From contig CDRNVI010000190.1 of assembly GCA_977017575.1 (NCBI GenBank), positions 62,001 to 126,000 of the forward strand: a stretch of DNA of 64,000 bases, written 5' to 3'. This document shows positions 27,501 through 59,847 of the stretch, in pieces; the first letter of the stretch is position 1, and every line of letters begins with the position of its first letter. The notes under the pieces are model-generated. The model was given only the letters and a program-made list of their open reading frames with translations. It was not told the origin of the DNA and did not search any database. The stretch is from Paramoeba atlantica. Lineage: Eukaryota; Protista; Discosea. Both the position numbers and the translations under genes were made by a program.

Positions 27501-30500
27501 ACTGCTCCAAGTGCCACACTATCTCCTACATGTAATCCTCGAGGCAAATTTGGTGTTACACTCCCAATGAAAGGCCGAACGATTTGTTCAACAGGATCTT
27601 CTTTTGGCTGAGCAGGATACTGCCCAAAACGTGTCCCATCATTTGCTGCAGCAAAGGCCATAATTGCATAAGACCCAAGTAAATCGGAAGTTCGGAATGG
27701 TATAGAAACAGACCCACTTGCATCTGTCAAAGCAGACATCTGGTGCAGTTCAGTAATCACAAAGTCAGTTCTGACTGTCAAAGTTTCAGAAGAGGAAGAT
27801 GAAGGGTTTGATCCATCATCTGATGGATTCGGTCCTGGTTGTGCACCTTTCTGAAAGGACTCCTCGACTACATCAGCAGCTTCCTCCTCTAACTCAAACC
27901 CACCAGCTGAGTACATCGGAGCGTTTTCTTGCCAATTCCCTCGAAAACCCCAACCATTTGGGAACATCGAAATTCGAGTGGTAAAAAGTCGATGGAGTTC
28001 ATCTTCAGTCTTATCAACTGGGTCCTTTTGCCAACGATCAGGCTGAAGGATCCATGGAGGAGAAAACCACGGGTCGTCCCTCATGACTTTGGTAAATTTT
28101 TCAATTGATGCCAAATACCCTTCAAGAGAAGAAAGTTGAGACATTGTTGCAAATGTTGAAATTGTTGAAGACGGGAGATATCTGAGATCTCTTGGAAGAT
28201 CGAATAATCCTGTAAGCTGAGCAGGGAGAAAGAGATCAAGCCAAGCACGATGAACTGCAAACACACAAACTTCAACAGAATCGACTGGATTGGAAGTAGA
28301 CTCATCCGTTACTGCCACTTTCACAACTGAAGAAGCACCAGGCTCTGCAATCGGAGGTGAAACCTGAACATCCACATTTAATTTCGCATCAACCTCCACC
28401 TCCAAACTCACAGAAAGACTATGGGATGCTGGTGCAGAAGGATCATAGAGTTGAGAATGAATAAAAGAAACACCTTCATTCACAAGTGGGCTTCGGGGGC
28501 GATAAGTCACAATCGAGACCTCACATCCAGATCGGCAGTGTTCATTTACTGGGATTGAAAGAGTTACCAAACGAGGACCATCAACAACCAAATGATCAAC
28601 AACTGAAGTTTGTTCATCTTGTATTGTTTCATAGTCATGACCAAATAGAGCAAGAGTTCGTGCATTTCGATAGGGGCAATAAAATGATATTTGAGCTGTT
28701 TCTCCCATGCGATATGCTCCTTCTCGATCTTTCTTTTGAGTAAAGGCTCCAAATCCATAAAATGGCTGGTTGTGCCACTCTGATTCTGTCAAACCAACAG
28801 GGTATAAAGTGTGAATGGGACGATCATTTCGATCATACATAAGACCACCAACTAAAAATCGTCCATACTGAGGCAAAATAAAAGTACAATAATTCGGTTG
28901 ATCTTCTTTGATAGTACCACCAATTACACACGAGTCAATAACTGTTGGTTCCCAAATACCTTCACCTGGAATGACAAGTAACCCTTCTTCATTTGTCTCA
29001 ATTGGGGTGACACCATCCCACTCAAACAATGACATTGTCATTTGACCAACCCCATTAACTTGTTTATCTCCATTAAGAGTTCGAACCTCAGCAAACATTG
29101 CAAACGAAACATGAGGAGGGATTGGACTCTCAAAGGAAGGAGTTAGCTGAAGGAGAAGCTCAGATTGAGCAAAAGGAATTCCAAGGGACGAAGAAATAAG
29201 TTCTCCAGTGGGACCTACCCATTCAGCAGTTACACTGAGTCTATCACCTTCCATTGGAGGAATTGAGTAATCAGGAAGGAGAGTATAGTGCAGTTGTCCA
29301 ATGTGATCAGTTGTAACTGTGATGACTCCAGACTCAGGGGCAATGGGTTCCCCTTCTTTGTTTTGGGGAATCATGATCGACGGATTGGTAAAGATGCATC
29401 CAGAGAGGGTCTCCCCAGGCCTTGGAGTTGGTGATGTAATAGAACCTGATTGATCACGACTCAGTTCCCATGTAAGATTGACTGTTGCATCACCTACAGG
29501 TTCACCCAAATAAGACAAAGTTTCAAGGTCCAACTCGACTCCACCTTGTTCTGATGATGGCCGAATAATTTTTTGGGAAGTTTCAAATAACATTTTTACA
29601 GTTGGTGGTCGAGGATCAGCAATCAAAATCGTCTTTTGATTCAGATACCAACGGTTCTGATTCTGAAGAATGATGGAACGAGGGCCTAGGGTGACATTAT
29701 GAACTGTCTCACTGTTCATTGGAACTTCAAAGGAGGCTTCGAAACTTCCAAAATCAGGGTGAACATCAACTGGAATCAGTGTTTCTTCTCCCCCATTTTT
29801 CCAGGTGACACTCAACCTCACCGACTTCGCAAGATCCTCGGGGATCTTGATAGGATATCGGAAAGGCTGGCGAATGTATCCTTTGAGGTAGATTGGATCC
29901 CCTGGTCGATAGACATGACGATCAGTCACCAATTGAGCAGTAACGGTCTCAGTTGTCAGGTGGCTTGATATGGGGACGGACTGAGAAATTTGAAGCTTTC
30001 CATTGTGTTCAAAAACAGCAAAGTAACGAATCCTTCTGGGAGGATCTGAAACTTCCAATGTTGCAATCCCATCTTCGTTTGTCACAGTTTGATCTAAAAT
30101 TCGAACATCGTTTTGATGGCCACAGGAAGAGGGGATAGAATAAAGGGTGATTTTAACACCTTCCAGGTGATCTGTATTTGAAGAAGCTGTTGCCCAAAAA
30201 AGAAGACGATTTTTTGAAGATTGACCTGAGCTAGAAAACATGGTGACAAAGAAATCGCTCGATGCCACAAATCCTTTCCTCCAATAAGTCCCACACGAAA
30301 ACTTATCCCAGTGGTAAAACAAACCAGAAGAAGACAAAAGGGATTGTGTATCAAATGAATAAGCTTTTTCTTCTTCAACACGAATATTGAATGAACGAAG
30401 GCTTTGGGTCCACGATGGAAGAAATTTTGAAGACACAGCACTACACAAAACTGATTGTAAGGAACTATTCGTTACAGGTGTGGCATAAGCAAAACTATCC

Positions 30501-31960
30501 CCTGTCTCGGCTGGGCAATAACGAAAGAAATTTGATAGATTCCTTGTCAAGTAAGTCCAATTAAACTCTGCTCCCCCTTCATCACGAAACTCAAAGATCG
30601 GATCTGGAACATCAAAAGGAGTTGCAAGCACACCAGCTGAATGGGAACTCGTAAATTCAATAAACGATTCTTGAACAGGTTGCCCAATTCCATCGATAAT
30701 ATCGCATTGATCAAGCTCTCCAAAACTAACTTTGTAGCGATGGTTTGGCTTAAACGATCCTTCAATTTCCAAAATCGCTTTTGATCGTTTAGCGAAAGAT
30801 AAGGTTACAGGAACTTCTTCCAATCTCCTCTCTTCGGACCGGACAATCACACAATCTTGAAGCTGAGAAAGAGACACTGATTGATCTAACCCGTGCCGCA
30901 GATAAATTTCCCAAACACGATAAGAAGGATTTCCAACTAAACCGTGGGATTGACGCTTCTTTGACATTGGTGCATTTCCTGAAAACTCGGGTGCTGTTCC
31001 TGGTCTCCCCTTGTCATTTTCTCGACGAGTATTAGATTCAAAAAATGGAATCACAAAAGGATAAGGACCAGATAACTTAATATCTAAGTCAGTTGAGGAA
31101 GGTCCTGCATAAGAGTGATACATTGAACCTCTTGGGAGGACAAGATGGTAAAAAAGACCAGGCACGAAATTTTCATTTGGAGTTAAGAGCAAACAAGAAT
31201 CTCCTGGATTGATTTCTTGTTTCTGTGATGAACTACAATATTCCAACTCAAAAGAAGGAGAAGAAGTTCCATCTTCAGATCGGAGAGAAAGATCTTGGAG
31301 AAGGGCAATTTCGACGTGGTTGTTGAAAGATAACTGGAGTGTTCCATCAGAAGGAACCTCGCTAATTCCTTCCACCCATTCAATCGATTGACCATTTAGT
31401 TGGGGACCTTTTCGAGCTGGAGGAGAGGAAGCCCTCCACCAATTGTCTGTCAAATTTAAAAGAAGAGGGGATTTCACACTTTGGAGATTCCAAGTTAAAG
31501 ATTGAGTTGTGAAAGAATAAGAACGTATTCCAGGGAGCTGAATTTTCTCACCATCAAAAGTTTCTAAATCCTCATTGATCACAATTGAGAAAGACAAATC
31601 AGAAGGCCAGGGAATGAAAGCATCAAAACGAGCAATGTAAGTTCCGACCCATCGAATCCGACCAGGAACAGAGGCACCCTCCAATCGAAAAGGAGGAGGT
31701 GTAGACATTGGAGATCCATCGGGTGACCAATCTCCTCCTAAAGGAAGGACAGGACGATTGAAAACAACTGTAATCGTATCCCACTCTCTCAACACAACGG
31801 GAGAAGAAGAATCGCCATTTAAGACAGAAGTAATGGAAGGGAGGACGGTGGAGACACGGAGAGGGTTGTTCTCAGATGAACTCACACCAATCCATAACAC
31901 AAGACCAAGAAGAAGAAGAAGACTTCTTGCTCTCCAACACCCAGAAATAGGGGACCACAT
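24589..31960 (-). CDS. Secreted bacterial-type alpha-2-macroglobulin-family protein lacking the thioester
   Basis: Signal peptide; Ig-like N-terminus (VVFNRPV..GRIRWVG); MG2 motif LVTDRHVYRPGDPIYLKGYIR; VRTDF..TDASGSVSIPF..GSYAIMAFA; alpha-barrel region. First exon 31960-27332, then many short exons down to WDPLSI*. Confidence 0.8.
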
Positions 31961-34415: not shown

Positions 34416-36522
34416 TCACTTTCGTTCACTCTTCTTGACATTTGGTTCCAATCGAGCGACTGCTTCTTTCGCTTCTTTATCACCTTGTTTTGCTGCCAAT
34501 TGATAATATAACAACGCTTGTTCCTTATTAGGTGCCACCCCCTCTCCTCCGTTTTCATATCGGTTTCCAAGCTTCTTTTGAGAGTAAAGACTCCCTTTTT
34601 CAGCTGCGATCATATAATAATAAATAGCCATTCCATCATCTTTCTCCACCCCAACCCCATTCGCATAACAAAATCCAAGATTTGATGTTCCAACAACAAG
34701 CCCACTCTCCGAAGCCAATTTGTAATGGTAAAAAGCAAGAAAATCGGATTGAGGCACACCATGACCATGAAGATAACAATCAGCCAACATGCCAACTGCA
34801 TTCAATTGTCCCTTTGGATGGGATTAATGAATTGCAAAAATAAAATTGAGAAAGAAGAGAAGGAAAAAAAATTACTTGAGCAACAGCAAGGCGTATGTAA
34901 CTGACAGCCTTTTTATAGTCAACCTCCATCCCGTTTGCTCCTGATTTGTGGTAATACGCTATATTTTTTTGTGATTGAGGCCAACCAATTCCGTCTGCAA
35001 GCTTTTCAGACAAAAGAGGTTATTCACAAGAGCAAAAAAGTTTTCAAAGAAAAAAAATTGGATGATTACCTCAGTCATGATTTTAAGACCTCTGACAGTG
35101 TCCTTTTCAACTCCAATCCCATTCAGAAGATTCCCTACAATATGACTCGGAATCAGATAAAAGGGTGGTGATGGGAACAGTGAGAGAAGGAGAATATTTT
35201 CGGTTGTTTGGTTCAAAAAGAATTAAAGAAAAAAACCTGCCATATTATTCGTTGCACTTGCAAGTCCTTGTTCAGAACCTTTGCAATAATATTGGTATCC
35301 AAGATTTCGCTCTCCAAGTTGTTCACAACATCGTCCAATACACCTTTGCGCAATGGAAATTCCCTAAATCAAGGAACAAAAAATGTCAAATCTCGAGAGG
35401 GAGAAACAACAACAAAAGATGAAAGAGTAAAAAGAAATGAATGTCAACCTTCTCGGCAAAAGGAAGTAAAATTGGTTTCACTTGATCATAAGAACGTGTT
35501 CCTTGAACATAAAGTTGAATCCCTCTTCCAAACCAGGAACCAGATTCAACAGAATATTGGGCCCATTTTCGACAAGAGGAATCAGAAATTTTTGTCCCAA
35601 CTCCATCAAGAAAACATATTGCAAGAAGTGCGGCACAATCTCCATCTAATTCACATTAAAAAAAGAGAATAATTATTAGTCTTTCAAACCAAAAAACAAA
35701 CAATTCTTTTTTTTGTTAGGAAAAAAGGAGGGGGGGAGAAAAATCACAAAAGATTGTGCCACAACCTGACCAAGCATGGTGGGAAGAAAGTAAAAAGGCA
35801 GAGAGGTGTTTCCTTTCGTTTAAAAGGGAAACCACTTTTGTTGCGATTGGCGATAGTTGGTTGCAACCTTTCTTTGAAACTTCTTTTGTACTTTTCCTTC
35901 TCTTTGGTTTTTGTTTGCTGAGATTTCCCCCCTTTCCTTCTCTTTTTTCTTCTTGTTTTTCCTCCTCTTGCTTTTCTTCTTCTTTTTCATCCTCTTTGCC
36001 CTCGTTTTTTCCTTCTTCTTGGTCTTCTTTTCGATGATCAAGTATTTCCGATCTTCGATGAAAAGATAAACGATCCAACTGGTGTAAATGAACAGAACAA
36101 CTCTCACATTGTCGCTGACAACCTTTTTGACAATCACAACAAATCACTCTTTGCTCCATTTCTCCGCAGATTTCACAATTTCTGTCTTCTTTCTCCTCTT
36201 CCTTTTTCTTTCTCTTCTCTTCGTCCTCACCAACTTCGGTAAGAAGCTCGATCAAAGAATAATTTTTCCCAATTGTATAGCCACTCTCTTGCATACAAAA
36301 AGGACAAGAAGGATTGGTAGGAGATTTTGTGAGCTCGTTCCAACAGCGAGAACATAATGAATGACCACAATGCAGAGACAGCGGAAGAAAAGATTCCGCT
36401 GTGTTTTTTGGGATGAACAAGAAAGAAGAAAAAGGGGAAACAAAAATGAAATCTCAAATACCTGTGACCGTAAAACTCTCAAAACAAAGATAACACAATC
36501 GTCCACTGGCTCTTGGGGCCAT
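34416..36522 (-). CDS. RING + B-box + Sel1-repeat protein (putative E3 ligase)
   Basis: Spliced RING CYLC..CGHSLCSRC..CPFC; B-box-like CEIC..CCDC..CESC..H..H; E/K-rich linker; Sel1 repeats (LGFCYANGVGVEKD, LGNRYENGGEGVAPN). Confidence 0.78.
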
Positions 36523-41192: not shown

Positions 41193-41408
41193 AGAAGAGA
41201 AAAGATTTTGCAACATTGCACAATCTTTCTTTCACGAGAGAGAAAAATGGAAAGGAGAGACAAAAATGATCTTTTCAAGCGAGGAAAAGAGATTTTAAAA
41301 CAAAAAAATGGTCAAAAGAAACCATGTCTCCCTCTTCTTTCTTCTTTCTTCTTCTCTCTTCCAAAAAAATAAAAAAAAGAAAGAGGAAAATTTCTAAATA
41401 TTTCTAAA

Positions 41409-44283
41409 TTATCCACTCGGAAGAAGAGAAGAAGGAGCAAAAGATAAAAGACGAGATTTTTCGACATTTTCGAGCGCTTCAAGAGTGAGAGGGTGTCTCT
41501 CTCCATGGGTGATTGAGAGAATTGTTGCTGCTTCTTCAAATGATTGGAGAGATTCAGTGATTCCTATTAACCTTTGAAAGAGAAGAAAGAGAGAGAAAGA
41601 GAGAAAGAGAAGAAAGAGAAGAAAGAGAGAAGAGAAGAAGAAAAGGGGTTGTTGAGAAAAGGTTGGAAATGGAAATATGGGAGAGATGAAAAAAAAGGAA
41701 AGAAAAATGAATGAATGAATGAATGAACAAACATTTGCAATTTTCCAACTTTGAAATTATGAAAAGCAACAGCAGGCCAATACCTCCCATAATAAGCTTT
41801 TTGTTTACAAGTTTTAAATAATATTCTGTCATTTTGTTTTGGAGAAAAGAAAAGAAAAAGAAAAGAAAAAGAAAAGAAAAAGAAAAAGAAAAAGGGAAAA
41901 AGGAAAAAAGAAAAGAGAAAAAAACCATAAAAAGAAGGAACAAGTTGAACACCAATCTCAAGTGCATCAATCCATCTCTCATCACAAAGAAGACATTGAA
42001 AGAGTGATTGAGAGAGAGAAAATAGGATATAATTGTGCTGTTTCAAGAAATGAATTATTCAAGAAAGAAAAAAAGAATAAAAGAAAAAAAATTAGGATTA
42101 AAAAGAAAAAGAAAAAGAAAAAGAAAAAAAGAAAATAAGAGAGAGGAAAAACCTGATGAAGAAGAGAAGAAAGAGAAGAAACAAGAGAAAAGAGATCATC
42201 TGTTTTTGCATCTTTGAAATCGAAATTGGTCATTAAAGATGAACAAGAATTCGAGACAGAAATATCATTCAAAGATAAATTCTCTTTCTTTTTGTATTTT
42301 CCTGTGAACCAACCAACCATTAAAAAGAGATCATATGAGAAATGAGAGAAGAAAAGAAAAAAAACCAATTTTCAGGAATAGTTTTTGAGAAAATTCTGAA
42401 TACAAAATAATTGTCTTACAATTCTCACATTCCCATCTCTCTCCTTCTCCTATTTCTTCCTCTTCTCCTATTTCTTCCTCCTTTTCTTCTTTCTTCTCTT
42501 TCTCTTTCCCTTGGTTGATGACAATCCCATATCCTTTTCAAAACTTTGTTAAATTCTCCAAGAGAGGAAAAGAAAAGAAAAGAAAAGAAAAGAAAAGAAA
42601 AGAATAAAGAAGAAATAACAAAAAGAGGATTAAATCAAACCAGAACACTGAGGACAAACAATTGCTTTCATCATCTTCTCAGACAACTCCAATACATCTT
42701 CCCCATATTTTGGAAAAGAAGAAGAACAAGAAACAGAACCAAGAGAGCGAGAAGAGAGAGAACAAGGAGAGAGAGGAGAGCAGAGAGAACAAGAACATTG
42801 AAAGAAGAAACTCTCTTGTAAATCTTTGATTCTTTCTTCTTTTGGTCTTCCTTTTTCAACATAACATATTGTCAGTTCTTCTCCTGAAAACAAAATTACA
42901 TCCAATTAATTCTTGTTAAAAGAACAAAAAGAAAGGCAAAAGAAAAAAAAAGAAAAAAAATGGAAATGAAAAAAAAACCTTTTTCAATTGGACAAGAAGC
43001 TCGAACCAAAAGATTTGTTCCATGAAAAGTACAAATTGAATTCGGTTTACATGAATGATTTACCATCGCCATCTCTTTATACAATCCAACTCCTATCTTT
43101 TTTAAAAAAGAAAAGAGGAAAAGAAAGAAAAAAAGAAAGGATCAATTGTGAGAGTGGAAGAGAGGTTTCAGAAAAGGAGAAAGGAAAAGAGAAGAAAAAG
43201 AAGAAAAAGGAAAGAAAAAGAAAACCTGATTCATCTCAGCATCACTGATAACAAGACAATTCGACATCAAAGAAGCAAAAAGAGAAAACAAAAAAGAAGA
43301 AGAAAGAGAAGAAAAGGAATTCTCAATCTTTTTCTTTGATGCATAAGAAGAAAGAAGATAATGTGTCCCCATTGCCAATTGAGTTGTTGCTTCTAGTGTT
43401 TTCCCTTTCAGTTCTTCTTTGTGGTTTATCAGCTGTTTCATATCATCGATTTCTGACAAAGAGAGATTTTAGAAGATTTGTTTCTTTTTTGATCTTTCCT
43501 TTTTGATCTTTCCTTTTTTTTCATCTCTATCTTTCTTTGAATATTTGAAAAATTGAGAATTACTGAACCAAATGATCTGAGATAAGTTAAATAAATTTTC
43601 CTACTTCCCAAATAGATATTTTAATACAAAAAAGAAATGCAAAGAAAAAACCTGGAAGAGAAGAAGAATTGCGAGCAATAATTCGAAACATGAGCCGCAT
43701 ACTTCTTGTGGGTCTCTTGCTTGGTCCACCAATTTGCAAAATCTCACATTCCATCTTTTACAAAAACTCTTTTTCAGTCTCCACCTCTTCTTCTCTTCTT
43801 CTCTTTTCTTTTCTTTCTCTTCTTTTCTGATTTTTTCTCTCTTTTCTTTGTTCTTTTGTTAACCTTGTGAATTGGCCAGACATTCTTCTGGCATTGACGA
43901 GAACAATATTTCAAATACTGACACTGACTACATCTTTTCAATGTCATCCTATTTTTCTTGGTTTTAGAGAAAGAAAGGAGAAGAAGATATCAAGAGAGAG
44001 AGAAAGGGAGAAAACAAGAAGGAAACCCTGTTTTAAAACAACCATCACAATAAGATGAAATAGATTCTTCATCCAGAACAGCAGCAACAGGTTTTTCTTC
44101 CCAAACCAACTTCCCTCTCCCAACCTTTTTCAAAGTTGTTTTTTGAGAACGAAAGAAGACAAGATAAGACACAACAAATCAAAATACCTTTGATGAAGAA
44201 GAAGAAGAAGAGAGAAAAACACCTCTCCCCTTTCCCACAGCGTGTTTCACTTCCCAACAACCATCTTTGTCCCATTCACCCAT
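41409..44283 (-). CDS. SMYD-type SET/MYND lysine methyltransferase, copy 1 (no zinc-finger tail)
   Basis: GKGRGV, MYND (CDGC..CSQC..YCSRQCQ..W..H..C), NHSC.PN, GEELTICY, post-SET CSCSLC and a TPR-like C-terminus. Stop TAA at 41409. Confidence 0.88.
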
Positions 44284-44557
44284 CGACTCTCCCAACAAAA
44301 ACAACAAAACAACAAAAACAACAAAACCAACAACAAAAACTGAAAATCAGATGGTGTCCCCAAAATTGTGGGACATTTTGGTGTCTTTTCGTTCTTGGTG
44401 TCCCTTTCCACGCAAAAAAAGACATCAAAAAAATTGGAGGTGAGTTGGGAAATGAAGGAAAAAAGGGTCAAAATTGGTCTTTAAAAAAAAAACTCATTTC
44501 ATTTCTAAAGTAAAGAAAAAGCTTAATATTAAGTAAAGAAAATTAAATAAAATTCAT

Positions 44558-44762
44558 TTAAAAGTAAAAAAAATTTGTGAAGGGTGTGGTTGGGTGGTGG
44601 GTGCTCTGGGTTTTGGATATTGGTTTGCTTGAAGAGAGTGTGAGTGATGGGGGTGGGAGTTTGAAAGGGGGGAGCGGTTTGGTTGGGGAGAGTGGAGGTC
44701 TCAGTATCAAGGGTGGTGTGGAAGTGGAGGGGGGAGTTGATGAAGAGCTGAGAGTTGGAAGG

Positions 44763-44794
<32 letters not shown>

Positions 44795-46714
44795 GGAAGA
44801 GGGAGAACAAGAGGTTTCTGATTTTTTGGGGGTTCTTGCATCCTTTGCTTGTGCACAATGCTTTTTTCCTCTCTTCTGTTGCTGGTCTATTCGGTTTGCA
44901 AACAAAATTAAATGTGAGTTCACTTGCTCAGGAATTTCTTTTTTCGCCTTTTCAAACCATTGTTTCACTTTTCTTAAAATTGCTTGATTCTCTGTCTCAA
45001 GAAAGATGATATCTCCCAAGCTAAAAAACACCTCAGAGTGATTTTCAAAAACATGATCATACAAAGAAACTAAATTTCCAGGATTCAATGTTGTTTGACA
45101 ATCCCCCAAAGAACACCTCCAAAACACCCCCTCCTTTCGAAAACACCGCCTTTTCAGGACTGACATTCGACGTCCTCCTTTACATGGTGTTGGTGTAGAA
45201 GCACTGCCTTCTCAAATAATAATATTAGAAAAATAAAGATGAACTTTAAAAAAAAGAAAATAAACCTGCTTCACTCTCTCCACCAGAAACAAAAGAAGGA
45301 GGAGAAGGAGAAGGAGAAAGAGGAGGAGATGAGGAGGAAAAGGAGGAGGAAGAGGAGGAAGAAGAAGAGGAAGAAGAAGGGGGAGAATGAGAGGCTTCTG
45401 ATTTTTTGGGGGTTCTTTCATCCAATGTTTGGGCATAATCTATTTTTCTTCTCTTCTGTTGATGGTCTATTTGGTTTGCAAAAAAATTTAAATGTGAGTT
45501 CACTTGCTCAGGAATTTCTTTTTTCGCCTTTTCAAACCATTGTTTCACTTTTCCTAAAATTTTCTGATTCTCTGTCTCAAGAAAGATGATATCTCCCAAG
45601 CTAAAAAACACCTCAGAGTGATTTCCAAAAACATGATTGTAGAGAGTAGCTAAGCTTGTCCTGTGTATCAATTTTGAACAATTCCCCAATGAACACTTCA
45701 AATACACCCCCTCCTTTTGAAAACACTGACTTTTCAGGACTGACTCTTCACACCTTGAAGTTTGACCTCTTTTACATAGTAGTGTTGGTGTATAAGCACT
45801 TCCTTCTCAAACAATAATATTAGAAAAATAAAGATGAACTTTAAAAAATAGAAAATAAACCTACTTCACTCCCTTCACCAGAAAGAGGGAGTTCTTGTCT
45901 TGGTGGACGCATTTTTCTTTTCTTTCGGTGAAGGTCTATTTGGTTTGCAAAAAAATTTAAATGTGAGTTCACTTGCTCAGGAATTTCTTTCTTCGCCTTT
46001 TCAAACCATTGTTTAACTTTTACTAAAATTTCCTTATTCTCTGTCTCAAGGAAGATGATATCTCCCAAGCTAAAAAACACCTCAGAGTGATTTTCAAAAA
46101 CATGATTGTAGAAACAAACTGCGCCTGTAGTATTTAGCAAACACGTTTGACAATCTCCCAAAGAACACTTCCAATTCACCCCCTCCCTTCGAAAACACCG
46201 ACTTTTCAGCACTGATATTTTACCCCGACCTCCTTTGCATGGTGTTGGCGCATAAGCACTTCCTTCTCAAATAATAATATTAGAAAAATAAAGATGAACT
46301 TTAAAAAAATAGAAAATAAACCTACTTCACTCCCTTCACCAGAAAGAGGGAGTTCTTGTCTTGGTGGACGCATTTTTCTTTTCTTTCGGTGAAGGTCTAT
46401 TTGGTTTGCAAAAAAATTTAAATGTAAATTCACTTGCTCAGGAACGTCTCTCTTTGCCTTTTCAAACCATTGTTTAACTTTCACTAAAATTTCCTTCTTC
46501 TCTGTCTCGAGAAAGATAATATCTCCCAAGCCAAAAAACACCTCAGAGTGATTTTCAAAAACATGATCATAGAAATAAACTAATTTCGTACTTTGTATCA
46601 AAAATGTTTGACAATCCCCCAAAAAACACTTCCAATTCGCCCCCTCCTTTCGAAAACACCGACTCTTCAAGAATGCAACCCGGCTTCCTTTTAGTGTTGG
46701 TGTATAAGCACTTC
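44558..46714 (-). repeat. Zinc-finger exon array of SMYD copy 2 (4 units)
   Basis: Exons 46714-46322 (393 nt), 46262-45861 (402), 45802-45266 (537) and 45207-44558 (terminal), separated by near-identical 58-59 nt phase-1 introns. Confidence 0.85.
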
Positions 46715-49634
46715 CTTCTCAAAGAATAAGATTAGAAAAATAAAGATGGACTAAAAAAAAAGAAAAAAACCTGCTTCACTCCCTCCACTTGAAACAAAAG
46801 AAGGAGAAGAAGGAGAAGGAGAAGGAGAAGGAGCAAAAGATAAAAGACGAGATTTTTCGACATTTTCGAGTGCTTCAAGAGTGAGAGGGTGTTTCTCTCC
46901 ATGGGTGATTGAGAGAATTGTTGCTGCTTCTTCAAATGATTGGAGAGATTCGGTGATTCCTATTAACCTTTGAAAGAGAAGAAAGAGAGAAAGAGAAGAA
47001 AGAGAAGAAAGAGAGAGAAAGAGAAGAAAGAAGAAGAAAAGGGATTGTTGAGAAAAGATTGGAAATGGAAATATGGGAGATGAAAAAAAAAAAGGAAAGA
47101 ATAATGAATGAATGAAAAAACATTTGCAATTTTCCAACTTTGAAATTATGGAAAGCAACAACAGGCCAATACCTCCCATAATAAGCTATTTGTTCCCAAG
47201 TTTTAAATATTATGTCATTTTGTTTTGGAGAAAAGAAAAAGAAAAAGGGAAAAAGGAAAAAGAAAATGGGAAAAATAACCATAAAAAGAAGGAACAAGTT
47301 GAACACCAATCTCAAGTGCATCAATCCATCTCTCATCACAAAGAAGACATTGAAAGAGTGATTGAGAGAGAGAAAATAGGATATAATTGTGCTGTTTCAA
47401 GAAATGAATTATTCAAGAAAGAAAAAAAGAAAAAAAAAAAAAAGAAAAATTAGGATAAAAAAAAGAAAAAAAGAAAATAAGAGAGAGGAAAAACCTGATG
47501 AAGAAGAGAAGAAAGAGAAGAAACAAGAGAAAAGAGATCATCTGTTTTTGCATCTTTAAAATCGAAATTGGTCATTAAAGATGAACAAGGATTCGAGACA
47601 GAAATATCATTCAAAGATAAATTCTCTTTCTTTTTGTATTTTCCTGTGAACCAACCAACCATTAAAAAGAGATCATGAAAAATGAGAGAAGAAAAAGAAA
47701 AGAAAAGAAATTAAATCTAAATCTAAATCGAAAGAAAATCAAGCATAAAAAAAAACCAATTTTCAGGAATAGTTTTTGAGAAAATTCTGAATACGAAATA
47801 ACTGTCTTACAATTCTCACATTCCCATCTCTCTCCTTCTTCTTCCTCTTCCTCTTCCTCTTCTCCTGTTTCTTCCTCCTTTTCTTCTTTCTTCTCTTTCT
47901 CTTTCCCTTGGTTGATGACAATCCCATATCCTTTTCAAAACTTTGTTAAATTCTCCAAGAGAGGAAAAGAAAAGAAAAGAAAAGAAAAGAAAAAGAAAAA
48001 AGAAGACTAAAAAAGAAAAAAAAGGATTTAAAATCGAACCTGAACACTGAGAACAAACAATTGCTTTCATCATCTTCTCAGACAACTCCAATACATCTTC
48101 CCCATATTTTGGAAAAGAAGAAGAACAAGAAACAGAACCAAGAGAGCGAGAAGAGAGAGAACAAGGAGAGAGAGGAGAGCAGAGAGGACAAGAACATTGA
48201 AAGAAGAAACTCTCTTGTAAATCTTTGATTCTTTCTTCTTTTGGTCTTCCTTTTTCAACATAACATATTGTCAGTTCTTCTCCTGAAAACAAAATTACAT
48301 CCAATTAATTCTTGTTAAAAAGAAAAAAGGGAAAAAGAAATGAAAAAAGAAAAAAATGGAAAAAAAAAGAGAAAAAAAAACCTTTTTCAATTGGACAAGA
48401 AGCTCGAACCAAAAGATTTGTTCCATGAAAAGTACAAATTGAATTCGGTTTACATGAATGATTTACCATCGCCATCTCTTTATACAATCCAACTCCTATC
48501 TTTTTTAAAAAGAAAAGAGAAAAAGAAAGAAAAAAAGAAAGGATCAATTGTGAGAGTGGGAGAGAGGTTTCAGAAAAGGAGAAAGGAAAAGAGAAGAAAG
48601 AGAAGAAAAAAGAAAGAAAAAGAAAACCTGATTCATCTCAGCATCACTGATAACAAGACAATTCGACATCAAAGAAGCAAAAAGAGAAAACAAAAAAGAA
48701 GAAGAAAGAGAAGAAAAGGAATTCTCAATCTTTTTCTTTGATGCATAAGAAGAAAGAAGGTACTGTGTTTCCATGTCAATTGAATTGTTGCTTCGAATGT
48801 TTTCCCTTTCAGTTCTTCTTTGTGGTTGATCATTTGTTTCATATCATCGATTTCTGAGAAATTGAGATTTTAGAAGAATTGGCTCCCACTTCTTTGAATT
48901 TTTTCTTTTTTTCAATCTCTATCTTTCTTTGTTGGATTGAATAAATATTTAAAAAATTGCAGAATTATTGAATGTTAATAAAAAAAAAGAAATGCAAAGA
49001 AAAAACCTGGAAGAGAAGAAGAATTGCGAGCAATAATTCGAAACAAGAGCCGCATACTTCTTGTGGGTCTCTTGTTTGGTCCACCAATTTGCAAAATCTC
49101 ACATTCCACCTTTTACAAAAACTCTTTTTCAGTCTCAACCTCTTCTTCTCTTCTTCTCTTCTTTTCTTTTCTTTCTCCTTCTTTTCTGATCTTTTCTCTT
49201 TTCTTTGTTCTTTTGTTAACCTTGTGAAGTGGCCAGACATTTTTCTGGCATTGACGAGAACAATATTTCAAATACTGACACTGACTACATTTTTTCAATG
49301 TCATCCTATTTTTTCTTGGTTTTAGAGAAAGAAAGGAAGGAGAAGAAGATATCAGAGAGAGAGAAAGAGAGAAAACAAGAAGGAAACCCTGTTTTAAAAC
49401 AACCATCACAATAAGATGAAATAGATTCTTCATCCAGAACAGCAGCAACAGGTTCCTCTTCCCAAACTAGCTTCCCTCTCCCAACCTTTTTCAAAGCTGT
49501 TTTTTGAGAACGAAAGAAAAAAGATAAGACACAACAAATCAAAAAACCTTTGATGAAGAAGAAGAGAGAAAAACACCCCTCCCCTTTCCCACAGCGTGTT
49601 TCACTTCCCAACAACCATCTTTGTATTCACCCAT
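44558..49634 (-). pseudogene. SMYD copy 2 fused to four zinc-finger modules; 1-nt frameshift near 48775 (pseudogene or sequence error)
   Basis: ATG at 49634. Reads ttgacatggaaac where copy 3 has ttggcaatggaaac, shifting frame before NHSC. All downstream exons, including four finger exons, stay open. Confidence 0.65.
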
Positions 49635-50020
49635 CGACTCTCCCAACAAAACCAACAAAACAACAAAACAACAAAACCAACAACAAAAACTGAAAATTTG
49701 AAAAGACAACGGTTTTTCGTTCGTGGTGTCCCTTTCCATAATTCCTTTCTTTTTTGGTGTCCCTTTGGAACTCTTTCATTTTTCTCAGCTCTCTTGAGTC
49801 GAATCCTTCATTTGATTTCGAAAGAATTTATTTTCTAGAATTATCCAAGATCCAGCTCCAATTTTTGAATCTGGTGGAAGTTGTTGGTCCACTTGTTCTT
49901 TTCTTCTTCTGAAAGCAATCTAAAAACTCATTGAATGAAATAAAATAAAATCCATTAAAAGTAAAAAACAATTCTTCTTCCTCTTGTTTTTTTGGGAAAA
50001 GAATTTGATCCCGATCACTT

Positions 50021-53000
50021 TCAGGAAAATACTCTCTCAACTTCACAGTTTCTGGTAATGCAAAGGATATTAAAATCAATATCGTCTTCATCACTTTCAC
50101 GATACAACATCTCATAAATTGTCAAAATGTTCAACTGCAACCCAACATCAGGAGAAGCCTCAAAGGAAGAGGGATAAGTCATCCAAAATAAAAAATATCC
50201 ACTTTCAAAATCACCTTCTTCATCTTCCTCACATGATGGGAAACTTCGATGGATTTCGTTCGCTCGAAAGGTTTGAAAGGTTCCCATTTCGGAATTCGTT
50301 CCACCCAAAATTTGGAATGGCGTTACTCCTGCTCCAATAAAAGGTGATGGAATCAATAAAGGCCACATTCTCTTTTTAATATATTGCTTCCATTGAACTG
50401 ATAGATCTTTTGGATCAAAGGTATCATCACTTGGAGGAACATCACTTGCATAAGGAAAGAGAATCATTTGTGTTGTTTTTCCTGAAATATACACAAAATT
50501 AACCCACACATTCTGAAGAAATGAACCAACACAAAACTCTTGGTTCAAAGCACGAGATTTAACAAACTCAATATCTGTGAATTGTGCTGTATCTTTCTGA
50601 AACCCTTGCAATTCAATTGCAACATTCTGTTGAAAAGAATTCAAGTGCATCTTTGTTTCTGAATCTTCCAAGATAAATTTTCGTTGGTTCGCATTATTAA
50701 TTGAAACCCACTTCGAATCACCTTCTTCCTCTATGATACTCTCTTTTCTTGCTTGTTGAAAAACTTCCTGAGCAGCAGATTCCCCCATAAAATTACAAAA
50801 GAAAGATGTATCTTTTACATAAAACCGTTCACCTTCAAAAGAAGAAGACGAGGAGGAAGATGAGGAGGAAGAAGAAGAGGAAGAAGAAGAGGAAGAAGAA
50901 AAAGAGGGAGAACGAGAGGTTTCTGATTTCTTGGGGGTTCTTGCTTCCTTTGTTTGTGTTTCATCCATTTTTCTTCTCTTCTGTTGATGGTCTCTTTGGT
51001 TTGCAAAAAAATTTAAATGTGAGTTCACTTGCTCAGGAATTTCTTTCTTTGCCTTTTCAAACCATTGTTTCACTTTTCTTAAAATTATTTGATTCTCTGT
51101 CTCAAGAAAGATGATATCTCCCAAGCTAAAAAACACCTCAGAGTGATTTTCAAAAACATGGTCATAGAGATAAACTAAGTTTAGACCTTTCAGTGTTGTT
51201 TGGCAATCCCCCAAAGAACACTCCCAAAACTCCCCATCCTTTCGAAAACACTGACTTTTCAGCACTGACATTCGATATCGACTTCTTTTACGTTGTGTTG
51301 ACAGATAAGCACTTCCTTCTCAAATAATAACATTAGAAAAATAAAGATGAACTTTAAAAAAAAGAAAAAAACCTGCTTCACTCCCTCCACTAGAAACAAA
51401 AGAAGGAGAAGAAGGAGGAGAAGAAGGAGAAGAGGAAGGAGGAGAAGGAGAAGGGGTATATCCCGCTTGGATTAACAAATCAATAAGATCTTCTCTCTCA
51501 CTAAACCCATACATCTCAGGGTCAATAGAGAGAGAAGAGAGAGCCTCTTTTATTTCTTTGATGCTCATTTCTTTGATTGGTTTTTGATATGGAGGAGGAG
51601 AAGAGGAAGAAGAGGAAGAAGAGGAAGAAGAAGAAGAACAAGAGGAAGAAGAACAAGAGGGAGAACGAGAGGTTTCTGATTTCTTGGGGGTTCTTGCTTC
51701 CTTTGTTTGTGTTTCATCCATTTTTCTTCTCTTCTGTTGCTGGTCTCTTTGGTTTGCAAAAAAATTTAAATGTGAGTTCACTTGCTCAGGAATTTCTTTC
51801 TTTGCCTTTTCAAACCATTGTTTCACTTTTCTTAAAATTGTCTTATTCTCTGTCTCAAGAAAGATGATATCTCCCAAGCTAAAAAACACCTCAGAGTGAT
51901 TTTCAAAAACATGGTCATAGAGATAAACTAAGTTTGAACCTTTCAGTGTTGTTTGGCAATCCCCCAAAGAACACTTCGAAAACTGCCCATCCTTTCGAAA
52001 ACACCGACTTTTCAGCACTGATATTTGATATCCCTGACCTCTTTTATGTTGTGTTGGTGAAAAAGCACTGCCTTCTCAAATAATAATATTAGAAAAATAA
52101 AGATGAACTTTAAAAAAAGAAAAAAAACCTACTTCACTCCCTCCACTGGAAACAAAAGAAGGAGAAGGAGAAGGAGAAGGGGTATATCTTGCTTGGATTA
52201 ACAAATCAATAAGATCTTCTCTCTCACTAAACCCATACATCTCAGGGTCAATAGAGAGAGAAGAGAGAGCCTCTTTTATTTCTTTGATGCTCATTTCTTT
52301 GATTGGTTTTTGATATGGAGAAGGAGAAGAGAAAGAAGAGAAAGAAGAAGAGGAAGAAGAGGAAGAAGAAGAACAAGAGGGAGAACAAGAGGTTTCTGAT
52401 TTCTTGGGGGTTCTTGCTTCCTCTGTTTGTGCATAATGTATTTTTCGCCGCTTCTGTTGCTGGTCTATTCGGTTTGCAAAAAATTTTAAATGTGAGTTCA
52501 CTTGCTCAGGAATTTCTTTCTTTGCCTTTTCAAACCATCGTTTCACTTTTACTAAAATTGTCTGATTCTCTGTCTCAAGAAAGGTGATATCTCCCAAACT
52601 AAAAAACACCTCAGAGTGATTTTCAAAAACATGATTGTAGAAAGAAACACAGTTTCCAGGATTCAGTTTTGTGTGACAATCCCCCAAAGAACACTTCCAA
52701 AACTCCCCATCCTTTCGAAAACACTGCCTTTTCAGGACTGACATATTACCCCGACCTCTTTTGCAATATGTTGGTGTATAAGCACTGCCTTCTCAAATAA
52801 TAACATTAGAAAAATAAAGATGAACTTTAAAAAAAAAAAAGAAAAAAACCTACTTCACTCCCTTCACCAGAAACAAAAGAAGGAGAAGGAGAAGAGGAAG
52901 AAGAGGAAGACAAAGAAGAAGAACAAGAGGGAGAATGAGAGGTTTCTGATTTCTTGGGGGTTCTTGCTTCCTTTGTTTGTGCTTCATCCATTTTTCTTCT

Positions 53001-53344
53001 CTTTTGTTGATAGTCTATTTGGTTTGCAAAAAAATTTAAATGTGAGTTCACTTGCTCAGGAACTTCTTTCTTCGCCTTTTCAAACCATTGTTTCACTTTT
53101 CCTAAAATTTTCTGATTCTTTGTATCAAGAAAGATGATATCTCCCAAGCTAAAAAACACCTCAGAGTGATTTTCAAAAACGTGATCATAGAACTGAACTA
53201 AGTTCTGACTTTGCATCAAAAATGTTTGACAATCCCCCAAAGAACACTTCGAAAACACCCCCTCCTTTCGAAAACACCGACTTTTCAGGAATGAAATTGA
53301 ACCCGGACGTCTTTTACATAGTAGTGTTGGTGTATAAGCACTTC
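50021..53344 (-). repeat. Zinc-finger exon array of SMYD copy 3 (4 units)
   Basis: Exons 53344-52850 (495 nt), 52788-52129 (660), 52071-51373 (699) and 51315-50021 (terminal), separated by 57-61 nt phase-1 introns. Confidence 0.85.
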
Positions 53345-56300
53345 CTTCTCAAATAATAGCATTAGAAAAATAAAGATGAACTTTAAAAAAAAACAAAAAA
53401 AACCTACTTCACTCCCTCCACCAGAAACAAAAGAAGGAGAAGGAGGAGGAGAAGGAGAAGGAGAAGGAGAAGGAGAAGGAGAAAGAGAAGGAGAAAGTCC
53501 TTGTCTTGGTGGACTTATTGAATGTTTGGAATTCTCAACACCATCATTACTGTTAGAAGAAGGAGAAGGAGAAGGAGCAAAAGATAAAAGACGAGATTTT
53601 TCGACATTTTCGAGTGCTTCAAGAGTGAGAGGGTGTTTCTCTCCATGGGTGATTGAGAGAATTGTTGCTGCTTCTTCAAATGATTGGAGAGATTCAGTGA
53701 TTCCTATTAACCTTTGAAAGAAAAGAAAGAAAAGAGAGAGAGAGAGAAAGAGAAGAAAAGGGGTTGTTGAGAAAAGATTGGAAATGGAAATATGGGAGAG
53801 ATGAAAAAAAAAGGAAAGAAAAATGAATGAATGAATGAATAAACATTTGCAATTTTCCAACTTTGAAATTATGAAAAGCAACAACAGGCCAATACCTCCC
53901 ATAATAAGCTATTTGTTCCCAAGTTTTAAATATTCTGTCATTTTGTTTTGGAGAAAAGAAAAAGGAAAAAGAAAATGGGAAAAATAACCATAAAAAGAAG
54001 GAACAAGTTGAACACCAATCTCAAGTGCATCAATCCATCTCTCATCACAAAGGAGACATTGAAAGAGTGATTGAGAGAGAGAAAATAGGATATAATTGTG
54101 CTGTTTCAAGAAATGAATTATTCAAGAAAGAATAAAAGAAAAAAAAAAAAAGAAAAATTAGGATAAAAAAAAGAAAAAAAGAAAATAAGAGAGAGGAAAA
54201 ACCTGATGAAGAAGAGAAGAAAGAGAAGAAACAAGAGAAAAGAGATCATCTGTTTTTGCATCTTTAAAATCGAAATTGGTCATTAAAGATGAACAAGGAT
54301 TCGAGACAGAAATATCATTCAAAGATAAATTCTCTTTCTTTTTGTATTTTCCTGTGAACCAACCAACCATTAAAAAGAGATCATATGAGAAATGAGGGAG
54401 AAGAAAAAGAAAAGAAAAGAAAAGAAATTAAAATCGAAAAAAAATCAAGCATAAAAAAAAACCAATTTTCAGGAATAGTTTTTGAGAAAATTCTGAATAT
54501 GAAATAACTGTCTTACAATTCTCACATTCCCATCTCTCTCCTTCTTCTTCCTCTTCTCCTGTTTCTTCCTCCTTTTCTTCTTTCTTCTCTCTCTCTTTCC
54601 CTTTGCTGATGACAATCCCATATCCTTTTCAAAACTTTGTTAAATTCTCCCATGAAAGAAAAAAGGAAAGAAAAGAAAAATAAAGAAAGGAAAAAATGGA
54701 AAAGAAAAGAAAAGAAAAAGAAAAAAGAAGATTAAGAAAGAAAAAAAGGGATAAAATCAAACCAGAACACTGAGGACAAACAATTGCTTTCATCATCTTC
54801 TCAGACAACTCCAATACATCTTCCCCATATTTTGGAAAAGAGGAAGAAGAACAAGAAACAGAACCAAGAGAGCGAGAAGAGAGAGAACAAGGAGAGAGAG
54901 GAGAGCAGAGAGAACAAGAACATTGAAAGAAGAAACTCTCTTGTAAATCTTTGATTCTTTCTTCTTTTGGTCTTCCTTTTTCAACATAACATATTGTCAG
55001 TTCTTCTCCTGAAAACAAAATTACATCCAATTAATTCTTGTTAAAAGAACAAAAAGAAAGGATAAAGAAAAAAAAATGGGAATAAAAAGAGAAAAAAAAC
55101 CTTTTTCAATTGGACAAGAAGCTCGAACCAAAAGATTTGTTCCATGAAAAGTACAAATTGAATTCGGTTTACATGAATGATTTACCATCGCCATCTCTTT
55201 ATACAATCCAACTCCTATCTTTTTTAAAAAAGAAAAGAGGAAAAGAAAGAAAAAGAAAGGATCAATTGTGAGAGTGGAAGAGAGGTTTCAGAAAAGGAGA
55301 AAGGAAAAGAGAAGAAAGAGAAGAAAAAAGAAAGAAAAAGAAAACCTGATTCATCTCAGCATCACTGATAACAAGACAATTCGACATCAAAGAAGCAAAA
55401 AGAGAAAACAAAAAAGAAGAAGAAAGAGAAGAAAAGGAATTCTCAATCTTTTTCTTTGATGCATAAGAAGAAAGAAGGTACTGTGTTTCCATTGCCAATT
55501 GAGTTGTTGCTTCTAGTGTTTTCCCTTTCAGTTCTTCTTTATGGTTGATCATTTGTTTCATATCATCGATTTCTGACAAAAAGAGAATTTAGAAGAATTG
55601 TTTCTTTTTTGATCTTTCCTTTTTGATTTTTTTTTTCATCTCTATCTTTCTTTGGATTGAATAAATATTTAAAAAATGGCAGAATTATTGAATGTTAATA
55701 AAAAAAAAGAAATGCAAAGAAAAAACCTGGAAGAGAAGAAGAATTGCGAGCAATAATTCGAAACAAGAGTCGCATACTTCTTGTGGGTCTCTTGCTTGGT
55801 CCACCAATTTGCAAAATCTCACATTCCATCTTTTACAAAAACTCTTTTTCAGTCTCCACCTCTTCTTCTCTTCTTCTCTTCTCTTTTCTTTTCTTTCTCT
55901 TCTTTTCTGATCTCTCTCCTTCTTCTCTGATCTTTTCTCTCTTTTCTTTGTTCTTTTGTTAACCTTGTGAAGTGGCCAGATATTCTTCTGGCATTGACGA
56001 GAACAGTATCTCAAATACTGACACTGACTACATCTTTTCAATGTCATCCTATTTTTTCTTGGTTTTAGAGAAAGAAAGGAGAAGAAGATATCAAGAGAGA
56101 GAGAAAGGGAGAAAACAAGAAGGAAACCCTGTTTTAAAACAACCATCACAATAAGATGAAATAGCTTCTTCATCCAGAACAGCAGCAACAGGTTTTTCTT
56201 CCCAAACCAACTTCCCTCTCCCAACCTTTTTAAGCTGTTTTTTGAGAACGAAAGAAGACAAGATAAGACACAACAAATCAAAATTACCTTTGATGAAGAA

Positions 56301-56386
56301 GAAGAAGAAGAAGAGAGAAAAACACCCCACCCCTTTCCCACAGCGTGTTTCACTTCCCAACAACCATCTTTGTCCCATTCCCCCAT
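50021..56386 (-). CDS. SMYD copy 3 fused to four zinc-finger modules and a C-terminal domain of about 270 aa
   Basis: ATG at 56386; SET/MYND motifs present. The last SMYD exon (ends 53404) splices in frame to four finger exons. Stop at 50021. Not every upstream junction was checked. Confidence 0.8.
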
Positions 56387-56664
56387 CGACTCTCCCAACA
56401 AAACCAACAAAACAACAAAAACAACAAAACCAACAACAAAAACTGAAAATACAACGGTTTTTCGTTCGTGGTGTCCCTTTCCATAATTCCTTTCTTTGTT
56501 GGTGTCCCTTTGGAACTCTTTCATTTTTCTCAACTCTCTTGAGTCGAATCCTTCATTTGATTTCGAAAGAATTTATTTTCTAGAATTATCCAAGATCCAG
56601 CTCCAATTTTTACCCCACAAACAATTAAATTATTGTCTTTTAGTTCGAGATTTTCTTTTATTTT

Positions 56665-58696: not shown

Positions 58697-59578
58697 ATGG
58701 CTGACCAGGACCTCTTAATCAAACTTCTTTTGATTGGTGACAGCGGTTCGTTTTCGAGAAAAAACTTCTTTTCTTTTTCACAAAACTCTTCTCAACCGAT
58801 TTCTTCGACAATCTTAGGTGTGGGAAAGACATCTGTTCTCATTCGTTTCGCGGAAGATTCTTTTACTCCCAACTATGTTACAACAATCGGAATTGACTTT
58901 CGAATTCGGACAATTGAATTAGGAGGGAAGAGAATGAAACTTCAACTTTGGGATACAGCTGGTCAAGAACGATATCAATCCATTACAAAAGGTGAGATTT
59001 TTTTTTTAATCTTCATCATCAATTTCATGAGAAAGAGATTGAGTTTCCTCTCAAATCAAAGGGTATTACCGTCATACAATGGGAATCATAGTTGTATATG
59101 ATGTCACCAACGAACATTCTTTTCGAAATCTTCGGCATTGGATTCGGAACATCGAAAAAGACGCCCCGCAGAATGTCATTCCAATCCTCGTTGGAAACAA
59201 GTGTGACCTTGTGGATGAAAAGGTTTTTTTTTCTTGAAAACTCTTTCCTTTCAAAATCTCTTCTCAAAAACTAAATGGATCAAAAAGGTGATTGAGACCA
59301 ATCGAGGGCAAGCTTTGGCAGACGAGAGGAAAATGCCTTTTTTTGAAACCAGCGCAAAAAATGGCGTAAATGTCGAAGAAGCATTCCTGACTTTAGTTCA
59401 TGCAATTCTTCAAGCAAGAAAAATTGACCTGAGTGACGGTCCAAAAGAGGTTGCTTCAAAAGAGGCAAAGCCACCAATCGATATTGGGAAACAAATGCCA
59501 CACCAACACCCAGACAAAATAACCCCTCCCCCTCCAAATGATACAAATGGTTGTTGTTCAGGAGCAGGGCAAAAGTAG
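58697..59578 (+). CDS. Rab GTPase, Rab8/Sec4-like
   Basis: [34 protein letters not shown] and ETSAK, with a CC motif near the C-terminus. Three introns. Confidence 0.92.
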
Positions 59579-59847
59579 AGAAAAACTCATGAAAAAGGAG
59601 TATTTAAAGAAGAAACTTCAAACAAAAAATTCAAAAAGCAAAAAGAAACTCTTCAAATGATCAATCGAGTAATTCCAACAACCCAAAAAAAATTGGCTCA
59701 AAAAACGAGTTATTTTTTCAAAGGACTGGAAAACCCAAAAAACACCAAAACGACTCTTTCTCTCCTTTTTCGCCCAATCCGTTTTCGTATTGTATTTTTC
59801 TCTCTCTCTCTTCCTGTCTCTTCTTTTCCTCCCTTCATTCCTGCCTA

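Follow-up and report, generated by a model that had tools for sequence, protein, structure and literature searches.

Methyltransferases of the SMYD1-3 type combine a SET domain split by a MYND finger with post-SET cysteines, a TPR-like C-terminal domain and the motifs NHSC and ELTICY. Here, we analyse a stretch of 64,000 nucleotides (nt) from the amoebozoan Paramoeba atlantica (NCBI GenBank assembly GCA_977017575.1, contig CDRNVI010000190.1, positions 62,001 to 126,000; hereafter the window), which carries three tandem genes of this type, designated SMYD-A, SMYD-B and SMYD-C. The split SET domain, the post-SET cysteines and both motifs recur at this locus, together with a putative TPR-like domain; however, unlike SMYD1-3, SMYD-A and SMYD-B appear to run on into four spliced, lineage-specific cassettes each, while SMYD-C is conventional. 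We propose that SMYD-A and SMYD-B encode SMYD enzymes equipped with diversified nuclear targeting or adaptor cassettes, and we assign to this reading, which covers gene structure plus function, a probability of roughly 0.55.

Several described systems invite comparison. It has been reported that SET methyltransferases gain lineage-specific reader or targeting domains, such as the MBD of SETDB1 or the Bromo and BAH domains of ASH1L (bioRxiv 10.1101/2021.11.30.470311). The P. atlantica locus resembles this accretion in that a conserved catalytic core is joined to different accessory domains in different lineages of eukaryotes, but the accessory unit found here is an orphan, is repeated four times and seems to have been added by exon cassettes. 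A second parallel is PRDM9 and, more generally, the PRDM/KRAB-ZNF logic, in which a SET-type methyltransferase is followed by repeated Cys2His2-patterned units that are homogenised except for a short hypervariable stretch, as is also seen here. However, the SET domain of the P. atlantica genes is of the SMYD type with a MYND insert, not PR/SET, and no KRAB or SSXRD match was found in the pieces scanned. Moreover, PRDM9 carries fingers of 28 amino acids (aa) in one minisatellite exon, whereas the units described here are four in number, ~115 aa long, encoded one per exon, separated by long linkers and without homology to C2H2 fingers; a role in DNA binding or recombination would be speculative. 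Finally, a rule of exon shuffling by phase 1-1 exons has been described for metazoan extracellular modules. The cassettes are similar in that symmetric phase-1 exons each encode a whole module and that tandem exon duplication would give in-frame arrays; they differ in belonging to an amoebozoan and to an intracellular, chromatin-type enzyme, and in having introns of only 56-61 nt.

Cassette exons likely extend two of three tandem SMYD genes

A repeat scan of the window detected the three SMYD copies, which lie on the minus strand at intervals of 6.7 and 5.4 kb, and, besides them, a family of eight 300-nt repeats, which correspond to the cassette modules A1-A4 and B1-B4 (Table 1). Exons 1-12 of SMYD-A form a coding sequence of 1771 nt that reaches the shared donor in phase 1 without a stop codon. 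In both SMYD-A and SMYD-B, a Ser/Pro-rich linker ending at this phase-1 donor replaces the usual stop after the TPR-like domain. Joined to A1-A4, SMYD-A amounts to 4920 nt, i.e., 1639 aa plus TGA, and SMYD-B with its four cassettes would give a protein of ~1210 aa; the cassettes add 620-1050 aa to SMYD. SMYD-C ends in '...SFAPSSLLPSG' and a TAA straight after the TPR-like domain, with nothing module-like downstream. Hence, this conventional, module-free copy serves as an internal control for a gene without the extension. The initial annotation, made by a model from the sequence alone, had treated positions 44558-56386 as one gene. The SMYD-(module)x4 architecture that it described holds, but the span contains two such genes, SMYD-A and SMYD-B with four modules each, and the third copy lies just outside it.

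The exon status of the cassettes rests on evolutionary evidence drawn from the sequence. The acceptor TTTGAGAAG/G[AC]AGTGCT and the donor GAAG[CT]AG/GTTT (slashes mark the exon boundary), both put forward in the initial annotation, have exactly eight matches each, all on the minus strand at the modules and nowhere else in the 64 kb. The six internal module exons are open in a single frame, in phase 1, and the lengths predicted for them (393, 402, 537, 495, 660 and 699 nt) are indeed all multiples of three; equally, the last SMYD exon joins the first module in frame, as had been claimed, and does so at the same phase-1 donor in SMYD-A and SMYD-B. The eight module introns, 56-61 nt long, do not form a series of multiples of three, each contains an in-frame stop, and read-through of any of them meets a stop within 6-40 codons. 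Overall, ~5.1 kb of cassette sequence is open and all 16 splice sites are intact.

Length changes are distributed unevenly between exons and introns. Among SMYD-A, SMYD-B and SMYD-C, exon lengths differ by -12, -3, +12, -111, -3, -3 and +6 nt, all multiples of three, while the differences in SMYD intron length mostly are not. Among the eight module paralogues, indels in the variable N-terminal linker measure 3, 6, 9 or 12 nt, and the module exons, although all different in length, are all multiples of three, while the module introns differ in length by 1-5 nt. Furthermore, in five of the eight modules (A1, A3, B1, B2 and B3) no ATG precedes the Cys/His motif. Lacking a usable start codon, these five are not free-standing genes, and the possibility of small independent genes was rejected for them.

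The module introns match 14 other local introns (11 of SMYD and three of Rab) in the style of their donor, branch and acceptor. Nine of the 11 SMYD-A donors begin with GTT; four of them read GTTTTT and one GTTTAT, which are both donor types of the module introns. The acceptors of SMYD and modules are typically A-rich (AAAG, ACAG), and a branch-like CTAA[AT] motif precedes the acceptor by 14-22 nt, an arrangement shared with the three introns of the Rab gene nearby. The module acceptor is itself a tandem of GAG and AAG, allowing a shift of 3 nt, and a second phase-1 donor, A/GTGAAG, lies 6 nt upstream of the first; since both alternative sites keep the frame, the exon result does not depend on the exact splice position. 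These observations support the view that the modules behave like a series of phase-1 cassette exons attached to SMYD, and we consider it likely that at least part of the transcripts contain them as coding exons serially spliced to SMYD.

The locus was also recovered in a second assembly, as an independent ENA contig from ERZ24900291 (locus L001) that is 98.4% identical to the window and has the same 4+4 module layout, which is therefore not an assembly artefact. Among the module exons only A1 changes length between the two assemblies (495 vs 492, a difference of 3 nt), and three module introns do so by 1 nt each. The last exon of SMYD-B is longer in the L001 contig (L001:8423-9410; window 46771-46967), where a Pro/Ser-rich, low-complexity stretch adds 191 aa and leaves the frame open as far as the donor. 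As judged from the two contigs, this insertion is a large length polymorphism in the SMYD-B linker.

The catalytic part is of the SMYD type

The identification of the upstream gene as SMYD, proposed in the initial annotation, is borne out by matches to zf-MYND, SET and SMYD3. Exon 3 of SMYD-A matches Pfam zf-MYND (E = 7e-10, 39.2 bits, cutoff 22.7), and in the gene model this exon separates the N-terminal part of SET from the exons for its C-terminal part. Exon 6, a single 39-aa exon, scores 21.8 bits against Pfam SET, just below the cutoff of 22.4, and a PDB search aligned exons 6 and 7 to consecutive residues of human SMYD3 (195-230 and 229-265). SMYD-A carries the GxG, NHSC and ELTICY motifs, the MYND finger and the post-SET cysteines, and its catalytic part looks intact. 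Toward the C-terminus, TPR_12 matches the last SMYD exon weakly (E = 0.018), and exons 10-12 appear by eye to line up with the C-terminal domain of SMYD3. Overall, the catalytic part belongs to the SMYD family, as a predicted SMYD3-like lysine methyltransferase.

Two further observations concern the tandem copies. Sequence identity among them (window 41400-56600) is mosaic: the 5' end of SMYD-C is 97-99% identical to SMYD-A and 66-82% to SMYD-B, and other segments favour other pairings, a pattern that suggests gene conversion among the tandem SMYD copies. At positions 44125-44135, 49486-49496 and 56226-56234, a comparison of the three copies reveals that, in SMYD-C, a mutation has turned the first AG after intron 1 into AA, with a 2-nt indel directly after it; the true acceptor of intron 1 is therefore the downstream AAAAAG in all three copies.

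The cassettes share an orphan Cys/His module

The repeated unit is ~115 aa long, and the eight module cores are 75-79% identical to A1. Each cassette comprises, in order, a variable N-terminal linker, the Cys/His motif, a conserved helical segment of ~50 aa, a basic KRRK cluster and a Ser-rich linker that is probably disordered. The KRRK-type cluster, which resembles a nuclear localization signal (NLS), follows the core in seven of the eight modules, B4 having only an N-terminal KRR; the Ser-rich linker is present in six, and B1 and B2 carry a short Pro/Arg-rich tail instead. Among the invariant positions are C23, C33, C38, H54 and H59, plus nearly the whole helical segment S60-N107. The Cys/His motif with a hydrophobic residue at H-3, as described in the initial annotation, was recovered in all eight modules in the form C-x4-C-x14/15-H-x4-H, with F or L at H-3.

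The designation of this motif as a zinc finger fared less well: the conserved Cys/His spacing stands, but neither a Pfam nor a PDB zinc-finger match was obtained and the AlphaFold core is of low confidence. The spacing falls outside the classical C-x2-4-C-x12-H-x3-5-H, and Pfam searches at E up to 10 together with a PDB profile search yielded no zf-C2H2, BED, other zinc-finger or any other family for the module. The zinc finger is thus an unproven hypothesis based on the residue pattern. The notion of a finger array had to be abandoned, as units of ~115 aa with long Ser-rich linkers do not make up a tandem C2H2 array.

Broader searches pointed back to the locus. A profile of the eight cores, compared with 1.84 billion representative proteins, returned only a self match (a 112-aa open reading frame, ORF, of the locus) and two bacterial TPR-CHAT proteins; a word-indexed protein search with the module returned only ORFs of the same ENA contig; and a scan of JGI metagenomes gave one TPR-repeat contig, which we regard as spurious. 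Membership in the TPR family found no support in Pfam TPR models, the matches to TPR proteins being sums of weak repeats. Two ideas about the module found no support: derivation from the SMYD C-terminal domain, to which no similarity was found, and an arrangement of two TPR-like half-repeats sharing SLGD, of which hhalign aligned the SLGD only, with a probability of 1.5%. A third, a dispersed repeat or mobile element, was rejected, as no further module copies were present in the window and none elsewhere in the protein collections. On these tests, the extension falls outside the C2H2, PRDM9 and TPR families.

AlphaFold2 was run on exon A3 with an alignment of nine sequences. The model shows a hairpin (residues 24-33) and helices at 35-42, 47-57, 63-72, 76-92 and 94-125 in a core of low confidence; both His residues lie in a predicted helix, and the hairpin precedes the first Cys (predicted local distance difference test, pLDDT, ~50). 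A 45-aa insert, found in A2 and A3 only, is predicted at a pLDDT of 78-86 as a helix-loop-helix, and in this it resembles the SAP domain (SAF-A/B, Acinus, PIAS; SAP-like in MANF/CDNF). Its best Foldseek matches, all at E >1, are SAP or SAP-like, namely the CDNF/MANF C-terminal domain, E1B-AP5, Hcc-1 and the SAP domain of PDB 1h1j; on the CDNF/MANF domain it reaches a target-normalised TM-score (TMt) of 0.84 and a root-mean-square deviation of 0.9 Å over 40 residues. Unlike established SAP domains, however, the insert has a loop longer than the canonical one and stays under the Pfam SAP cutoff of 23.9 (E = 0.26, 11.4 bits). The 272-aa C-terminal region of A4 (50024-50839) gave no homologue and no Pfam match and was modelled at a pLDDT of 36; in its place, B4 has a tail rich in Pro, Ser and Thr.

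Divergence is concentrated between the Cys and His pairs

Among the eight module copies, the mean nucleotide p-distance is 0.054 for the 3' 40 nt of the intron, 0.062 for the 162-nt helical segment, 0.21 for the N-terminal linker and 0.355 for the 45 nt between C38 and H54, a patch of 15 codons. The inter-ligand patch diverges ~6 times as much as the adjacent intron and helical segment, and 13 of its 15 residues vary. This pattern fits repeats made uniform by recent duplication or gene conversion, apart from sites at which distinct sequences are retained. From four independent sister pairs (A1-B1, A2-B4, A3-A4 and B2-B3), we obtained ratios of nonsynonymous to synonymous differences (pN/pS) of 1.21 for the patch, 0.21 for the ligand motifs and 0.35 for the helical segment; the stretch C23-K32 contains 14 nonsynonymous and 0 synonymous changes and hence gives no ratio. 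The difference in rate between patch and helix is pronounced (heterogeneity, p = 2e-7).

By patch similarity, A1 pairs with B1, A2 with B4 and A3 with A4. Given this pairing across arrays, the arrays have been rearranged since the A/B duplication. The gain and loss of modules envisaged in the initial annotation agrees with this picture, since the A and B arrays hold different modules in a different order, as would be expected from gain, loss or shuffling.

A proposed function and its alternatives

In the reading that we favour, the cassettes would serve as nuclear targeting modules or adaptors, linking the catalytic domain of SMYD to partners that could be chromatin, nucleic acid or protein substrates. 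Recognition would fall to the surface formed by the rapidly diverging patch that separates the Cys from the His pair and, since this patch differs in each cassette, we propose that the four cassettes may represent four specificities. In two of them (A2 and A3) the SAP-like motif could assist by binding nucleic acid or a partner; this insert and the KRRK clusters in seven of the eight modules hint at a nuclear, nucleic-acid-associated role. Since the internal exons are all phase 1-1, exon skipping would keep the frame, and either skipping or intron retention, with its stop in 6-40 codons, could give isoforms with fewer cassettes. A much bolder version is that an amoebozoan independently built a diversifiable targeting array on SMYD from new metal-stabilised domains, in which the patch sets the DNA, RNA or protein target and exon duplication, shuffling, skipping or intron retention reprograms lysine methylation; this we regard as a long shot.

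Several results weigh against the favoured reading. The protein, metagenome, Pfam and PDB searches gave no homologue of the module outside the locus and no family match, and the AlphaFold pLDDT is about 50-65 over the module core and ~50 over the Cys/His motif. The nonsynonymous excess of the patch over the helix reaches only p = 0.064 in the Fisher test, and a patch pN/pS near 1 would also be expected under relaxed constraint of a loop. In the window, SMYD-B is frameshifted: exon 5 (48853-48628, minus strand) carries a 1-nt deletion (TTGAC-ATGG, near 48775), which leaves it with 226 nt vs 227 in SMYD-A, SMYD-C and the SMYD-B of the second assembly, and which is either an assembly error or a real null allele. 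Moreover, neither protein-collection search returned a module-containing peptide from the P. atlantica transcriptome MMETSP0151, some genomic ORFs of the same contig being absent from the results as well. Peptides of this transcriptome are present in the searched collections, because the PRP40-like ORF of the window is 100% identical to EukProt EP00008_Paramoeba_atlantica_P001721. The missing module peptide may mean that the gene is weakly expressed or silent in culture, that its repetitive transcript was not assembled, or that the collections are incomplete.

The frameshift and the missing peptide would also suit an explanation in which the cassettes lie outside a functional SMYD protein, being a recent, decaying or silent tandem duplication or separately transcribed units, and the high nucleotide similarity of the modules fits it too, since open frames could partly reflect youth or gene conversion. 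We find this improbable: the open frames and intact splice sites extend over the entire cassette sequence, exon indels come in multiples of three only while indels are free in introns 57 nt away, pN/pS is low in the helical part and in the ligand motifs, five of the eight modules are without a usable start codon, SMYD-A and SMYD-B lack a stop where SMYD-C has one, and the frameshift is absent from the second assembly. If the cassettes do form part of the protein, they might be metal-free, all-helical, TPR-like units for protein interaction, with the variable patch as a peptide-binding surface and the Cys and His residues structural or incidental. The C-terminal domain of SMYD enzymes is itself TPR-like and binds partners; the only non-self matches in two independent searches were TPR repeat proteins, aligned to GDIIFLETEN...KVKQWFEKAKK, and the AlphaFold core consists of four helices arranged as two hairpins, with SLGD before each. 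We nonetheless hold such units to be rather doubtful, since the TPR match scores add up many weak repeats (~4 bits each in the PDB case), the Pfam TPR models do not match the modules, the half-repeat alignment is confined to SLGD and the modules have no similarity to the SMYD C-terminal domain. Moreover, four invariant Cys/His residues stand beside a hypervariable stretch, an arrangement with a chance of ~0.012 given 10 invariant columns of 27.

The same residues are central to the opposite possibility, namely that the modules are true DNA-sequence-specific zinc fingers, a fast-evolving, programmable code in the manner of PRDM9 or KRAB-ZNF that directs lysine methylation to genomic sites. Such fingers would explain why the Cys2-His2 pattern is kept in eight of eight modules while most residues between C38 and H54 vary, with divergence peaking at the expected start of a recognition helix; NLS-like clusters and SAP-like motifs would likewise suit a nuclear protein that associates with nucleic acid, and the A and B arrays hold different patch sets. 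However, no zinc-finger profile matched at E up to 10 and the PDB search yielded no finger, the C-to-H spacing of 14-15 exceeds the classical 12, and the low-confidence AlphaFold model has its hairpin ahead of the first Cys in the pair. Four ~115-aa units with disordered linkers of 20-120 aa between them are also unlike arrays reading contiguous DNA, and pN/pS is not significantly >1. SMYD enzymes, in turn, are largely known as methylators of non-histone and histone substrates that are recruited via protein contacts. Hence, sequence-specific fingers have, in our opinion, a slim chance of being correct, and DNA binding, 'programmable' targeting and a PRDM9-like role are speculation. On this balance, we retain diversified nuclear targeting or adaptor cassettes on a SMYD enzyme as our preferred reading.

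Genes surrounding the SMYD locus

The neighbours of the SMYD genes are ordinary amoebozoan nuclear genes, and nothing among them suggests a mobile element or a virus (Table 1). Three other features of the window were recorded. An uninterrupted ORF of 1585 aa (27203-31960, minus strand) combines a signal-like segment at its N terminus with the MG2 and bait-region domains of alpha-2-macroglobulin, and is an unusually long single exon for an intron-rich region. At 19219-20895 (plus strand) there are several tandem copies of a small gene with the common motif '...SKPKILVIGGS...CEGILFYP...FEEAIVSFEKDVES...', which has no Pfam match. Two paralogous ORFs (4094-5101 and 13382-14638, both on the minus strand) have signal-peptide-like N termini and the common blocks 'H[VG]..TGG..L' and 'EPV.R.LSIW', again without a Pfam match.

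Table 1. Features of the P. atlantica window (positions within the 64,000-nt stretch).
Feature	Position	Strand	Description
SMYD-A	53404-56386	minus	12 exons, ATG at 56386, last exon 53711-53404; 11 introns of 53-154 nt; no stop, phase-1 donor at end
Intron SMYD-A to A1	53345-53403	minus	59 nt; GTTTTT donor, CTAAT branch motif, GAGAAG acceptor
A1 internal exon	52850-53344	minus	495 nt, phase 1-1; Cys/His motif 53166-53246; first Met inside motif
A2 internal exon	52129-52788	minus	660 nt, phase 1-1; Cys/His motif 52616-52693; SAP-like insert 52184-52318
A3 internal exon	51373-52071	minus	699 nt, phase 1-1; Cys/His motif 51896-51973; SAP-like insert 51458-51592; no ATG before motif
A4 terminal exon	50021-51315	minus	1295 nt; TGA 50023-50021; Cys/His motif 51143-51220; 272-aa orphan C-terminal region 50024-50839
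SMYD-B	46771-49634	minus	same 12 exons and phase-1 donor as SMYD-A; 1-nt deletion in exon 5
B1 internal exon	46322-46714	minus	393 nt; Cys/His motif 46548-46628; no ATG before motif
B2 internal exon	45861-46262	minus	402 nt; Cys/His motif 46087-46167; no ATG before motif
B3 internal exon	45266-45802	minus	537 nt; Cys/His motif 45618-45695; no Met in whole exon
B4 terminal exon	44558-45207	minus	650 nt; TAA 44560-44558; Cys/His motif 45038-45115; tail rich in Pro, Ser, Thr
SMYD-C	41409-44283	minus	intact 12-exon paralogue; own TAA 41411-41409; no modules
PRP40-like ORF	6252-8093		EukProt match
FYRN/FYRC protein	8836-10618	minus	
tRNA gene	18053-18123	plus	sole Rfam match in window
RabGAP-TBC protein	22358-23668	minus	
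RING-finger protein	35716-36420	minus	
Rab GTPase	58700-59580	plus	three introns of 65-72 nt, used as splice-signal references

Significance

SMYD enzymes are widespread, and how they are aimed at their substrates is poorly understood. The conventional SMYD-C beside the cassette-bearing SMYD-A and SMYD-B provides a natural experiment in the gain of targeting modules by a methyltransferase. The locus also illustrates cleanly how phase-1 exon cassettes can multiply in a protist whose introns are very short, and it adds a new orphan Cys/His domain. If the cassettes do have distinct binding specificities, they would represent a convergent 'enzyme plus programmable array' outside Metazoa and, should the array on SMYD have arisen independently, it would be a functional analogue of the PRDM/KZFP logic that evolved outside animals from unrelated parts.

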